DNA of 64,000 nt. It comes from Guillardia theta CCMP2712. Lineage: Eukaryota > Protista > Cryptophyta. The notes under the pieces were generated by a model. That model was given only the letters and a program-made list of their open reading frames with translations, searched no databases and was not told the DNA's origin. Of the stretch, positions 42,387 to 48,208 are shown one piece after another (within the stretch, counting starts at the first letter, position 1; the number at the start of each line of letters is the position of its first letter). The translations under genes were made by a program, and so were the position numbers. Where the stretch lies: assembly GCF_000315625.1 (NCBI RefSeq), contig NW_005434562.1:56980-120979 (forward strand), given 5' to 3'.

Positions 42387-42640
42387 AGTAGCGGTCTTGC
42401 TTGCTTGTATGAAGTTGCTGAAACCCATCTCATGGCTCACTGTTGTGCTTGCCTGTACCTCACGGCAAAGAGTAGGAGCCAACCGGCTAAGGTCGAGTGC
42501 CTTCGAGATGCTAGCAGGGCTAGAGGAGAGACGGTCAAGTTACTTGATGTGGGATATTTGAAGCTTAGAGATGTCAGTGGCTCGCTCAATTTCTCCCAGC
42601 TCATCGCGTCAGCTGATTTCCTCTCGTCTCCACTCCACTC

Positions 42641-42794
42641 GTCTCGTCTCGTCTCGTCTCGTCTCGTCTCGTCTCGTCTCGTCTCGTCTCGTCTCGTCTC
42701 GTCTCGTCTCGTCTCGTCTCGTCTCGTCTCGTCTCGTCTCGTCTCGTCTCGTCTCGTCTCGTCTCGTCTCGTCTCGTCTCGTCTCGTCTCGTCT
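42641..42794. repeat. Perfect (GTCTC)30 pentanucleotide microsatellite between two convergent genes
   Basis: Directly visible. Confidence 0.99.
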
Positions 42795-42905: not shown

Positions 42906-45900
42906 TCAACGGAACTCGATCAGCAGCTCCAGATACGTCTGGTTGCGATCGTACACGATGAACTCCCGGGCCTGCGGGTTGCCGATGACTGAGTCGTAGA
43001 GGCGACCAGTGGAAGCGTTCGGCGGAGGTCGTCGATGGTTCCGCACTTGAGCGTTCTCGATCGGATCGCCGAGGACGACGCGGACGAGGAACATGGACTT
43101 GAGGCCCTGGGCGTTGGGGGAGCAGAAGCCAGCGCTCTTGCTCGAGTTCTCGGCGAAGTAGATCCCGGCCCCGAACGACCCGCCCAGGTTCCCCACCCGC
43201 TCGTCCAACCCTCCATCGATGATGCAGTCGACGCTGTGGGCCTTGGTGCCATGGAAGAGGAAGACCTCGTTGCTCTCCGTGTCTCGCTTCAGCTCGGAGT
43301 CCATCCAGGGCCTGTCGGTCAGTACTGCCGTCCTCTTGCGAGCGACGCCGCTCTCGATCATGCTCTGAATGATCCGCTTCCTCTGCAGGGCAAACGACTC
43401 CCAGTGGTCTCGATTCTCAATCTGGAGGATGCGGACAACGTGGCAGCCCCCGGAGCCTGTGGAGCGCATGAGCTCCTCTATCCTCCCCTTCCACTCCCTC
43501 GTCACGTCCACTCTGCCCCTCCTGACTGTCCCAGTGGTCGCCACCTTCCAGTAGAGGGGAGGGTTGAAGATGACTGCATCCTTCCTGATGTCCTTCTTCT
43601 CCTCCTCGAACTGCTGCTTCTCCTGCTCCCAGGTGCTGAGCTTCCGCTGCAGGCTCAGCTCGCTCCTCTGAAGCTCCAGCTCGTGCAGGCGGATCGCTTC
43701 CTTCTGGTCTCTCAACCTGTTCTCCTCCTCCTCAAGGCGTCGCTTCATGGTCTGCTCCTCACAGTCCAGCTCTCTTCCCTTGTGCTCGAGCTCCTGCTTC
43801 CTCTCCAGCATCTTCTGAGTTTCGGCTTCATTCCTCCTCTTCTCTGCTGCACACTTCGCCTGCTGATCTGCCAGCTCCTGCTGCCTTCCTTGCAGCTCCG
43901 CCAGCTCCCTCTCGTGCAAGCGCTGCATCTGCCTTCGCTCTTCCTCGATCTGCTCTCGCTCGACGATCATCGAGCTGGTGAAGTAAGGATGCGCGAGGGC
44001 TTGCGCGGAGGAGGGGCGAGCTGCACTGTCCTGATGAAGCAAGCTCGAGATCAGCTGGGAAGCGTCACTGTCCTCCAACCTCCTGATCGCATCCAGCAAC
44101 ATCTCCTCCTGTCCCAGTCGCGGCTGGACGTCAGTGAGCAACTGCAGCATCACAACCCCGTATGAGTACATGTCGCACTTGTGCGACACTCGTCGCCGCG
44201 CGTCCTCCAACGAGGAGCAGCCGACGATCTCCGGCGCCGCGTACGCGAGGGTGCCTCCTATCGGCTTGTCGATGGTCGAGGCGACGCTGACTGTGCAGAC
44301 GATCCCGTTGATCCGCTCCTCTTGGTTTCTCGACACGTCGAAGTCGGCGATGCAGGGCAGGGCGTCGGGGGAGGAGGAAGACAGCAGGATGTTCGTCGGT
44401 TTGATGTCGCAGTGTACGATGCTGTTCTGTCGCAGGTGCTCGAGGCCTTGCAGGACCTGCAGCAGCACCCGATGCTTCTGCTGCTCGCTTGGCCGGACCC
44501 CCTGGCACCACTCAAGGAGCGTTCCTCCCTCGTAGAAGGGCATCTTGATGTACCCCCGCAGCTCCGGCAGCCGCCCGTGCGAGTGATCGTCCTCGATGAA
44601 GATGCTCAGGAGCCGGACGAGGAAGGGATGCTCGAGCTTGTGCAGCATGGCAGCTTCTTTCAGGAAGTGCGCGACTTCGCTCCTGCGGTCTGACATGATG
44701 TACTCCTTGAGCACGTAGGTAGCCCCTCCCTGCTTGACAAGGTACACGGAGTGGCGGGAGCCCTGCTGACCAGCCTTTGACAAGTGACGGACGATGTCGA
44801 ACATGGAGATCCTGGAGCAGCTCTCGATCATGTCGACGTGCGGGACTTCGATCCCCAGGGACCTGTCCAGCTGAGAGGTCACCAGCTGCTCCAGCAGGTG
44901 GTTCTTGTACTCCGGGAAATGAGCGACGAGCCGGCACAGGTGCGCGTCGACGTCCCGGAGGGCCCTCAGCTTGCATGCCAGCTCGTCCTTGATCTCGGCG
45001 AACTTCTGTTTCGCCTCCTCAGCTGGGAACCTCCGTTTCGCCGCCTTCTCGATCAGATGCCTCTGGTCGTCAAGATCGTCTTCCAGGACCTCCACCTCCT
45101 CCTTCAGCCTCCTCCGCCTCTTGAACACAACACCTGGGTCCTCCAGCCCTTCCATGCTCGAGACCTCCTGAGCCAGCGGAGAGAGATCGATCACCTGGTC
45201 GACGAGCACGAGCGAGCGTATCAACCATTCCCTCGCACACCGCAAGATTGGATGCAGCAGGTGGTGGGGAAACGAGTCCACGATCGTCTCGCTGCTGAGG
45301 AGAGCCTCTTGCTCCTGGAAGACTTCCTCCAAACTCTTGCAGGACTGTGACAAGGAGCTTGACAGCTCTTCACTGCTTCGTCCCGCTGCCATAGCGTCAC
45401 CATTAAGCATTCTGACAACCTCGCTCAGATCAGATGCCATCGCCCTTGCAATCTGATTTCTCTTGTCGGAGGTTTCATGAATCAGCCTACTCACCTCCGC
45501 GCCCCATCCCCGCATGGTCTCGTTTAAATCCTCGAGGTGCATGAGAAAGATTGTCCTCTGCGTCAGAGCCTCCTCGTTCATCTCCTCTCTCTCCCTCTCC
45601 TCGCTTGACTCCTCCTGCGTGTCTCCTGGACTCTCAGCCAGACGAGCAGAGTGGAAGTCTGCAGCTTCCGCAAGCTCCTCTACCAGGGCCCTGAAGTCCT
45701 CCAAAGAGGTTTTGCACTCGCTCTGGGATCGCGGCAGCCTGTCAAACGCCGCCAGCATGCGCTCTCGAGTCTGATCGCGAACTCTCGACACCTCTTTCAC
45801 ATCCTCGTCCAGCACTGCCCCGCCTCGTTCCTCATCTCCCTCTGACTCCCCTGGCGCCTCCGACGAGGACGTGGCAGTCAGTCCGGAGAGACTCAGCTGG

Positions 45901-47510
45901 AGGTCGTTGAGGTCATGCCGGAGCTTGTCAAACTCAGATTTCAGCCGGCAGACATTCAAGAAGGAATCATGACCGGGACTCTCCATGAGGTGCTTTAACT
46001 GATCGAAGAGAAGGTAGATGTTGATCCCCCTCACTACCTTCTCGTCCTTGAAGTTGGCAGCAAGCGCTCTCAGATCCACTTCATGTGCGGAGCTCCGATG
46101 GAGGAGGCTTCCCCCCCCCGTAGAGGAGGATTGTCTTTCAGCCAGCTCGACAAGTCGATTGATGGTGCAGACACAAAGTTTGTTGTCGTAAGCCGCCTCC
46201 ACCGCCGCTCTTTCGCCCTCGCTTACATCCTGACGTGTCTGCTCGCCCTGACGCTCTTGCTCTACACTTTCCTCCGGTCCAGCTGGACTTGACCTGCCAT
46301 CTTCGGCAAGGATGGGAAAAGAGAGAAAATCCGTGTGTCTGAAGCTGCTCTCCTCCACCACCTCTTCCTCCTCTCCACGACAATGCAGGCATGGCGTGTT
46401 TGAATGGCAGCACTGGCAAAGGTCGCAGGTCTGTTAGGACGGTCTCAACTGGAGATGAATGGTTCTTACGTTCTGCCATCGAATGTCAATGTTAGGGCAC
46501 AACGTCACAATGATGAGCTTACACAACACTTGAGGAAAAGCCGTTCATGGACGAGGAGGCAACAAACTCAAGTCAAATTCCCTTGCGTAAACTGTTGAGA
46601 TTCGATAAATGCTTACCAGCTGGATGGAAAGAAATCGTCGTCAACAACCATGATAAAGAAATGATCAGCGGGGAGACGCAGGGCAAGGATGTGCTTACAT
46701 GCTGAGTATCCCAGTGTGTCATCGTATGAGAGATCGTGGGGAAAGTCGTGTCAGAATGAGATCGAGCACAGGTCATCGCAAGACTCACAATCTTCCATTG
46801 AGGAAGAAAAGCCCATAGACGAAGGCAGCAGCGATCCGATGAAAACGTTAGATCCTGACAAACTTCATGGCTGAACATACCGGCTGCGCACAAAAGATGC
46901 ATCAGCACATTCAGCTATAGAGGGTCTTGGTGATTGCTTACATACTACGTCGAGAGCAGAGAAATGCAGCGAAGAAGTTCATCGCAAGTAAGAGAACAAG
47001 TCAGTGTTTGTGAAGATCTCAAGGAGATTCTTCCTTACAATCTGTAAAGAGAAAGAAGTAAGAGACAGAGAGACAGAGAGACAGAGAGACAGAGACAGAG
47101 ACAGAACAAGGATTGTTCGACTTACTTCCTTTGATCATAGTTGGACAAGGCAGAACCAGCGGGTAACGTCAAGACTCAACGTGTCATTGCATAACATGTC
47201 ACTCTCACCAGCTGGAGGTTCGCAGGAGAGGTCCCGGCGGATGAAGAGAAACAAGTCAGACGAGTGGAGGAAGAATACTACCACTTACTCCCTGATCAAT
47301 TGTGAGCGAAAAATGTCGGAGGAGCTTTCATGATGACTTACTCGCTGTTTTCATTCCGTACAATGTCGAGGATCGAGGTCGAGAGGTAGGCGATGCGAAC
47401 ATGTCAGCACGATGGGATGAAGAAGCTAGTGAAAGCGGCACCGTCTGCATGTCCTGTGAGAAGGAGTAGGAACAGAAGCAGGGGCGGGAGCGGGAGCGGG
47501 AGCGGGAGCG

Positions 47511-47575
<65 letters not shown>

Positions 47576-47878
47576 AGCTGCAAGATGGTCTTACGCAAAC
47601 TTGTGGGCTTTTACTTCCTCGCTCTACAGGGATCTGTGCATTACAAGCCTGAGTTTCAAGAGGTGACGTCCTCCCCTCCTCTTCCTGCCTCTGCCCTCCT
47701 CCCCTCCTCTCCTCCTCCCTCTCCCCTCTTCCTCCTCCCTCTCCCCTCTTCCTCCTCCCTCTCCCCCATCCGCCTCCTCCTCTCCTCCCTCTCCCCTCTT
47801 CCTCCTCCCTCTCCCCCATCCGCCTCCTCCTCTCCTCGCCCTCCATGCCTGGCATTTGTTGCACTGTTTCATTGCCAT
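42906..47878 (-). CDS. Cys/His-rich N-terminus (micro-exon encoded), helical/coiled-coil region, Ser/Thr protein kinase, coiled coil, tankyrase-like PARP catalytic domain. Predicted exons: 47878-47849, 47648-47595, 47453-47442, 12 micro-exons between 47344 and 46470, and a large terminal exon 46412 (or 46430)-42906
   Basis: Kinase: YVLKE, FLKEAAML, IVHCDIKPTNILL, ADFDVS, GTLAYAAPE, CDMYSYGV, ARPSSAQALAHPYF. PARP: FLFHGT, GGSFGAGIYFAENSSKS, MFLVRVVLG, YDSVIG, REFIVYD. The 1151-aa ORF begins at GTG with no nearby in-frame ATG and stays open upstream to in-frame CAG acceptors, which implies upstream exons. Confidence 0.9.
46470..47344 (-). other. Array of 12 phase-0 micro-exons: CGA 47342-44, GGA 47289-91, CTG 47209-11, GAA 47126-28, ATT 47039-41, TAT 46942-44, CCG 46881-83, ATT 46789-91, CAT 46699-701, CTG 46617-19, TGTTGT 46523-28, AAC 46470-72 (R-G-L-E-I-Y-P-I-H-L-CC-N)
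   Basis: On the minus strand each triplet is preceded by CAG/TAG/AAG and followed by GTAAG (9), GTGAG (2) or GTATG (1). Spacers of 50-94 nt mostly carry CTGAC/CTAAC/CTGAT/TTGAC branch-like motifs and pyrimidine tracts. Confidence 0.85.
47061..47104. repeat. (AGAGAC/AGAGAGAC)n microsatellite inside a micro-exon intron
   Basis: Directly visible. Confidence 0.9.
47485..47572. repeat. (GGAGCG)n(GGAGCA)n hexamer microsatellite, intronic in the kinase-PARP gene
   Basis: Directly visible. Confidence 0.95.
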
Positions 47879-48208
47879 CTTGGCACCATGCAAGTGGTAC
47901 TCGTCTTGAGGTGGGGGCTCAAGCCTGGATTTTTATCGATTGCCTTACTAAGCTTCCGGCCCCACCCCCGGGGACCCCCTCTTATGCCAAATAGGTTTCC
48001 TAGCTCGAGGGAACCCAAACCTGCCCGATGTCATTTGGGTGGAGGAGATAACGAGTGAAGTTTGTTCATTCAAAAGTGAAAACGAGAATATCAAGAGACG
48101 GCGACGATGAGCGAACTCACGCCCTCTCTTGTAGCTCTCTTCGAATTACATCCTCATATGCTCAAACTCAGCAGCCTGAAACTTCCGTCACCACAATAAT
48201 CAGACAAG

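Follow-up and report, generated by a model that had tools for sequence, protein, structure and literature searches.

How does the kinase-PARP gene at this locus of the cryptophyte Guillardia theta come by its N-terminus? The gene lies on the minus strand of a 64,000-nucleotide stretch of contig NW_005434562.1 (assembly GCF_000315625.1, positions 56,980 to 120,979), which we refer to as the window. Within its large terminal exon, a coiled region precedes the protein kinase domain, at residues 550-811, and residues 983-1122 form a PARP catalytic domain. A stop codon lies seven codons upstream of the first base of this exon at 46412, no ATG stands between the two, and the first in-frame methionine is reached about 140 codons inside the exon. 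With the frame closed in this way in G. theta, the conserved motif at the start of the exon is therefore translatable only through an upstream exon, and expression of the large exon must depend on splicing to coding exons further upstream. The initial annotation proposed that the connection is made by a ladder of micro-exons, nearly all of them a single codon long, which raises the question of whether such a ladder is real, whether it is translated and how it would be spliced. From comparisons of sequence, the ladder very probably consists of real, translated one-codon exons. For the reading as a whole, in which these exons form part of the 5′ coding portion of the kinase-PARP gene, encode a loop at one codon per exon and are constitutively included, we estimate a probability of about 0.7.

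The ladder and its splice signals

The minus strand between 46470 and 47344 holds twelve short segments, eleven of 3 nucleotides (nt) and one of 6 nt, each enclosed by an upstream AG and a downstream GT. The AG is present in 12/12 units, and the downstream sequence is GTAAG in nine, GTGAG in two and GTATG in one, so that all twelve are short segments between a canonical acceptor and a canonical donor, within the size range of spliceosomal micro-exons (≤30 nt). Every unit length is a multiple of three, no unit contains a stop codon, and the introns that follow the twelve units measure, in order, 50, 77, 80, 84, 94, 58, 89, 87, 79, 88, 50 and 57 nt. The number of units, their donors, the 50-94 nt spacers, the uniform phase 0 and the lack of stops agree in full with the initial annotation, as does its claim that the units bridge the upstream exons to the large exon in frame: a scripted translation of the small exons together yields 45 residues that continue without a change of frame into the large exon at 46412. 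A scan of the region returned no further strong AG-3n-GT candidate between the ladder units, and no domain was found in the other reading frames or on the plus strand of the region.

The clustering of these units is far from what chance would give. Across the window, the motif AGNNNGTRAG occurs 34 times compared to 21.4 times in shuffled sequence, and 10 of the 34 matches fall within 882 nt on one strand, where about 0.15 units are expected (Poisson P ~1e-15). Genome-wide, in the 87.1-Mb assembly of 669 contigs used for all such searches, a three-unit pattern has 139 matches compared to 28 in a reversed control. Tandem Repeats Finder reported simple repeats in introns 1, 2 and 7 only and no repeated spacer; an origin of the window spacers by tandem repetition was rejected, the spacers not being tandem copies of each other.

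The introns of the window ladder resemble one another scarcely more than shuffled sequences do (score 8.3 vs 7.5, global identity 0.56), and an nhmmer model derived from the look-alike ladder introns of sister loci, 49 in all, found no match in the window. Despite this divergence to random level, all 24 splice signals of the ladder are intact, and since the signals have been kept while their surroundings were randomised, they appear to be in use. AG dinucleotides are depleted inside the ladder introns (17 vs 27 expected), and most strongly in the last 40 nt before the acceptor (6 vs 16 expected, p ~0.001). The branch-site motif CTRAY is found in 11/13 introns that flank micro-exons, at 40-59 nt before the acceptor in 8/13 and at 13-21 nt in most others. 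Judged by length, branch motif and AG-free run, each flanking intron therefore looks spliceable on its own. A simple repeat, (AGAGACAG)n, at 47061-47105 occupies most of ladder intron 7, which separates the E and I micro-exons; this intron has no CTRAY branch motif and offers only CTTAC, some 18 nt ahead of its acceptor.

Upstream of the ladder, the first exon of the initial annotation proved right, including its start codon, while two points of that model had to be revised: intron 1 is of the GC-AG rather than the GT-AG type, and the donor of exon 3 is weak. The alternative to exon 3 is a single 250-nt intron, 47594-47345, with a CTGAC branch motif 59 nt before 47345, and the reading frame is unchanged whether or not exon 3 is used. 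A longer version of exon 3, reaching into the first unit, was rejected, as it breaks the frame and meets a stop. The coordinates of all exons are collected in Table 1.

Table 1. Predicted exons and first introns of the kinase-PARP gene, with positions in the window
Feature	Position	Strand	Donor	Remarks
Exon 1	47849..47878	-	GCATGG	MAMKQCNKCQ (C-x2-C); start codon at 47878
Intron 1	47649..47848	-		200 nt, GC-AG; purine-rich GGAGGA-type tandem repeats
GC donor after exon 1	47848-47843 (window)			GC donor also at L003, L005, L008-L010, L012, L015, L018-L021 and L023
Exon 2	47595..47648	-	GTAAGA	54 nt; ACNAQIPVERGSKSPQVC; last residue Cys
Intron 2	47454..47594	-		141 nt; (CTCCTG)n repeat
Exon 3	47442..47453	-	GTGCCG	12 nt; DMQT; good acceptor, weak donor; uncertain
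Micro-exon R (CGA)	47342..47344	-	GTAAGT	
Micro-exon G (GGA)	47289..47291	-	GTAAGT	
Micro-exon L (CTG)	47209..47211	-	GTGAGA	
Micro-exon E (GAA)	47126..47128	-	GTAAGT	
Micro-exon I (ATT)	47039..47041	-	GTAAGG	
Micro-exon Y (TAT)	46942..46944	-	GTAAGC	
Micro-exon P (CCG)	46881..46883	-	GTATGT	
Micro-exon I (ATT)	46789..46791	-	GTGAGT	
Micro-exon H (CAT)	46699..46701	-	GTAAGC	
Micro-exon L (CTG)	46617..46619	-	GTAAGC	
Micro-exon Cys-Cys (TGTTGT)	46523..46528	-	GTAAGC	conserved across the family
Micro-exon Asn (AAC)	46470..46472	-	GTAAGA	conserved across the family
Large terminal exon	42906..46412	-		1168 codons and stop; starts CCHSNTPCLHCRG; coiled region, kinase, PARP

Several further observations concern the two ends of the gene. 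The repeats of introns 1 and 2 are complementary, and a long duplex between them is predicted to loop out exon 2 (minimum free energy -205 kcal/mol, z = -2.8; 47454-47848, minus strand). Pairing of the two introns may help or regulate splicing. In paralogue L022, too, the first intron is rich in GA and a later one in C/T. A search of the region with Rfam returned only sub-threshold, microRNA-like matches, which arise from the complementarity between the repeats of intron 1 and those of intron 2 in the window gene. A six-codon upstream open reading frame (ATG GTG CCA AGA TGG CAA TGA, 47869-47889, minus strand) runs across the main start codon in a different frame. At the other end, the PARP domain (42909-43460) keeps the motifs FHGT, GIYFAE and EFIVYD, and by eye its His-Tyr-Glu catalytic triad seems intact. 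About 110 nt past the kinase-PARP stop, presumably in the 3′ untranslated region, lies a (TCTCG)n repeat of 173 nt (42622-42794; 34.6 copies, 97% match).

A gene family with the same exon layout

The initial annotation had suggested a genome scan for other ladders. A genome-wide search for the ending of this one, a 6-nt Cys-Cys exon, a short intron and a 3-nt Asn exon, uncovered it at 23 further loci, giving 24 with the window locus included, compared to none in the reversed control. Across these loci, the Cys-Cys exon is spelled TGCTGT in ten, TGCTGC in nine and TGTTGT in five, the Asn codon is AAT in 20 and AAC in four, and the introns between the two exons fall into 13 unrelated groups with at most 75% identity between groups. 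With synonymous codon changes in the exons and unrelated introns around them, the Cys-Cys and Asn exons are therefore conserved as protein and not as DNA. The units are real and non-random, and the predicted module, together with its exon layout, is conserved over at least 24 loci. Upstream of the Cys-Cys and Asn exons, the family ladders comprise 0 to ~19 single-codon exons as counted by a strict parser, for which some ladders of length zero reflect weaker donors or longer introns, as at L004 and L006.

The upstream exons are also shared. A first exon of the type M-x(2-4)-C-x2-C-[QKE] followed directly by a donor is present in 18/24 loci, and the exon 1 at the window locus is of this type. 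The donor is GC in 12 of those 18 (13/19 with the window locus counted), mostly as GCAAGG or GCAAGA in the family and as GCATGG at the window locus. A rare intron type is kept at one position across old paralogues. In the paralogues inspected, exon 2 comprises 13-18 codons, ends in a Cys codon and is followed by a GTAAG, GTAAT or GTGAG donor. The order of the N-terminal module is C-x2-C (exon 1), the Cys that ends exon 2, Cys-Cys, Asn, Cys and C-x2-C, with the loop that leads from the third Cys to the Cys-Cys pair encoded at the window locus by ten 3-nt exons, then the 6-nt Cys-Cys and the 3-nt Asn exon that end the ladder. This arrangement probably forms a cysteine-rich, zinc-binding module.

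Downstream of the Asn exon, most paralogues have a 36-nt exon of the form C-[AS]-K-x-x-G-W-x-x-Y-[DE]-[EK]. This exon is absent at the window locus, where the large exon follows the Asn exon immediately, at CCHSNTPCLHCRG, and for this reason the window locus appears to be a divergent, shortened member of the family. The large exons of four paralogues (L004, L006, L018 and L019) open with xGCx[H/L]CK, which aligns with PCLHCR here and contains two invariant Cys residues. The large exon of the window gene has both a start similar to G-C-x-H-C-K and a homologous coiled region. These four are kinase-PARP genes as well, and all four have ladders, while other family members encode a kinase alone, a U-box with a kinase, or a beta-helix with a kinase. 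No paralogue of the N-terminal 242 residues of the window's large exon was found elsewhere in the genome.

The composition of the ladder codons bears on whether they are translated. Among 127 ladder codons of the family, Tyr makes up 15%, Trp 9% and Gly 13%, compared to 1%, 1% and 7% in background AGNNNGT triplets, and the residue before the Cys-Cys pair is aromatic in 11/17 loci. The ladders contain 19 Tyr codons, each one mutation away from a stop, and neither TAA nor TAG occurs, which argues for selection at the level of the amino acid. Taken alone, the absence of stops from the 127 codons is weak evidence (P = 0.11). The ladder in the window, R-G-L-E-I-Y-P-I-H-L, has a lower share of Gly and aromatic residues than the average ladder of the family.

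In a subset of sister arrays (L010, L012, L018, L019 and L023), the ladder introns are look-alike copies of ~105 nt that are 70-75% identical, start with GTAAGT and carry GGCTGACAT near position 45 of their consensus. The codons between these introns are identical at random level (0.24-0.32). Conserved introns with hypervariable exons are the reverse of the usual pattern, and this suggests duplication of units with codon turnover or with diversifying selection.

The Hanusia phi orthologue and competing readings

Only two close homologues of the large exon were found in large protein collections, both of them transcript-derived proteins of Hanusia phi. The first (P0001) has 917 residues, is 66% identical and has a start that corresponds to residue 243 of the large exon. 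The second (P0002, EP00960_P043088) has 236 residues, spans residues 1-206 of that exon and aligns with it from the very first residue (CCHSNTACRNCR vs CCHSNTPCLHCR); this start is the best-conserved part of a region that is 44% identical. The motif CCHSNTxCxxCR that opens the large exon is thus common to the orthologue. Of the metagenome scans, one was without matches, and what another returned was limited to generic kinases (23-29% identity). A maximum-likelihood tree places Hanusia P0001 next to the window gene as its sister (100/100), with a sister clade made up of the other four kinase-PARP paralogues (99/99). Since both G. theta kinase-PARP clades carry the Cys-Cys and Asn ladder, the ladder layout predates the Guillardia/Hanusia split.

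From these features, a mechanism can be outlined. Each intron of 50-94 nt would be recognised singly, by intron definition, through a strong donor that is independent of the exon bases, a CTRAY motif, often placed 40-59 nt ahead of the acceptor, and an interval poor in AG between the two. At a distance of only 3 nt, an acceptor and the following donor cannot be occupied simultaneously, and we infer for this reason that splicing probably takes out neighbouring introns in succession, in a manner similar to recursive splicing, with distant branch sites easing the crowding. All units would normally be included. Over evolutionary time, ladders would grow and shrink by gain or loss of whole units of codon and intron, in which the frame is never broken, and paralogues would therefore come to have loops of very different length and sequence. 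The loop diversity visible here appears to lie between paralogous genes, in the germline and not in splicing.

Some observations weigh against this account. Residues 1-21 of Hanusia P0002, ahead of CCHSNT, read MLSECKARNPCKDFSHFGSSQ and do not include the Cys-Cys and Asn residues; if P0002 represents a mature mRNA, the orthologue is without such a ladder end. Exon 3 (DMQT), with its weak donor GTGCCG, is the least certain of the exons. The units are all multiples of three, and the frame cannot separate inclusion from skipping. As to the order of splicing and the part played by distant branch sites, we infer rather than observe. In addition, protein searches, which possibly did not include the organism's own genome records, found no G. 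theta protein that covers this N-terminus. The first of these points has a probable explanation, namely that P0002 is a transcript retaining the last intron. The similarity breaks off precisely where the G. theta exon begins, the residues FSHFGSSQ are the translation expected of a pyrimidine tract followed by CAG, and the loss of Cys-Cys and Asn from an orthologous mRNA would be odd when they are kept in far more distant paralogues. If P0002 does retain an intron, the last intron of the ladder is present in Hanusia too.

Much of the same evidence has to be weighed when the ladder is taken to be present in the DNA and, as a cassette block that is vestigial or regulated, mostly or wholly skipped in the mature mRNA, with exon 2 or 3 joined straight to the large exon or with translation from a downstream start. 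Skipping of units that are all multiples of three would leave the frame intact, the P0002 transcript has CCHSNT with no Cys-Cys and Asn ahead of it, and the R-G-L-E-I-Y-P-I-H-L loop falls below the family mean in aromatic residues and Gly. However, 24 splice signals were kept while the introns were randomised and the protein diverged by 34-56% from the Hanusia orthologue, Cys-Cys and Asn are conserved in 24/24 loci, and a G. theta transcript starting in the last intron would be unable to translate CCHSNT; we regard this reading as unlikely. Skipping on a smaller scale was the proposal of the initial annotation, in which each micro-exon is independently included or skipped to give up to 2^12 variants, that is, thousands of N-terminal isoforms. 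Applied to the putative zinc module, stochastic or regulated skipping of single exons would make the ladder a device that diversifies a receptor-like loop residue by residue from one gene. Independent skipping would fit with exons that are all symmetric and free of stops and with a loop that is hypervariable between paralogues, yet the donors are uniformly strong, the family-wide invariance of Cys-Cys and Asn implies constant inclusion of at least those two, and diversity is already supplied by the many germline paralogues. The figure of 2^12 is thus unsupported, since strong donors, competent introns and conserved Cys-Cys and Asn exons point to constitutive inclusion, and independent skipping is improbable.

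A role without translation fares somewhat worse still. The units could be non-coding waypoints in a 5′ leader, allowing a spacer of ~1 kb to be removed in steps while translation starts elsewhere, and the juxtaposition of AG and GTAAG does resemble recursive splice sites; exon 3 also offers an in-frame ATG. But three bases are always left between AG and GT and would stay in the mRNA, the ATG and C-x2-C of exon 1 and the final Cys of exon 2 are conserved as protein in the family, the ladder codons are biased at the amino-acid level, and introns of 50-94 nt need no stepwise removal, all of which leaves this reading very doubtful. As for chance or an artefact of simple repeats, which the repeats in introns 1, 2 and 7 might bring to mind, the spacers are not copies of one another and the same architecture recurs at 23 other loci, and the cluster probability, the excess of the three-unit pattern (139 vs 28) and the count of 24 loci against none effectively refute it. 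Constitutive inclusion of translated one-codon exons therefore accounts best for the features of the locus and its family.

Known micro-exon systems and significance of the ladder

Very small exons have been described in several lineages. An isolated 3-nt exon occurs in MAP4K5 (PMC8632122), and RPS24 contains three micro-exons of 3, 18 and 22 bp (PMC12207440). In plants, 1-nt exons are found in APC11 and VPS55, with conserved GTRAGT donors, and rice has an adjacent pair of 5 nt and 12 nt (PMC8831610). Isolated micro-exons of animals and plants show that the ordinary spliceosome suffices for such exons, and both annotation and aligners routinely overlook them. They resemble the window units in their size scale of at most one codon and in their strong donors. 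They differ in occurring singly or as at most two or three consecutive exons, in places that are fixed and conserved, whereas the window has twelve, in a number that varies between paralogues and within a variable loop.

Other systems are similar in some respects only. The micro-exon genes of schistosomes consist for the most part of symmetric micro-exons of 6-36 nt, encode small secreted proteins and have documented exon skipping. The likeness lies in runs of micro-exons with lengths in multiples of three within one gene, in multigene families and in protein variation. In the window gene, the exons are almost all 3 nt long and make up 39 nt of a coding sequence of ~3.6 kb, and the product is a large kinase-PARP protein without an obvious signal peptide. 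Micro-exons are thus far from being most of the coding sequence, the rest of which is formed by a 3.5-kb exon and exons of 30, 54 and 12 nt. Ratchet points of recursive splicing (AG|GTAAGT) are located in long introns of Drosophila and vertebrates and leave no bases in the mRNA. They share with the ladder an acceptor that adjoins a strong donor, implying stepwise, ordered removal. Unlike these zero-length exons, the window units hold 3 or 6 bases between AG and GT, so that 3 nt remain per step, and the introns of 50-94 nt are not very long. Families of the introner type are comparable only to the sister loci, where the ladder introns are look-alike copies of ~105 nt. The introns at the window locus are unrelated and not near-identical copies, and the sister copies are arranged in tandem within one gene family and not dispersed in unrelated genes. 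No literature linking introner families to micro-exon arrays in Guillardia was found.

The initial annotation knew of no described ladder of a dozen consecutive single-codon exons in an alga, and full-text literature searches found none either: they turned up no account of consecutive one-codon exons and none of micro-exons in Guillardia or in cryptophytes. If the ladder is spliced as predicted, the spliceosome would cope with long runs of one-codon exons, far beyond the isolated exons of 1-3 nt, and the question arises of how an acceptor and the next donor can be used when they lie only 3 nt apart. For the protein, a ladder would offer a route to changing the length of a loop one residue per step, with no risk of a frameshift.

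The finding may also have a bearing on the biology of the cryptophyte more broadly. In a form confined to the germline, the gain and loss of units and the turnover of their codons might give rise to a fast-evolving recognition loop rich in Tyr, Trp and Gly, a proposal that we put forward tentatively, at somewhat less than even odds. With similar caution, such loops, placed on kinase-PARP, kinase-U-box and related effector proteins, could constitute an innate-immune-like repertoire in a cryptophyte. Ladder genes would be invisible to gene predictors and spliced aligners, so that cysteine-rich N-terminal modules may be missing from cryptophyte proteomes, and the modules possibly missing sit on signalling and death-type enzymes.

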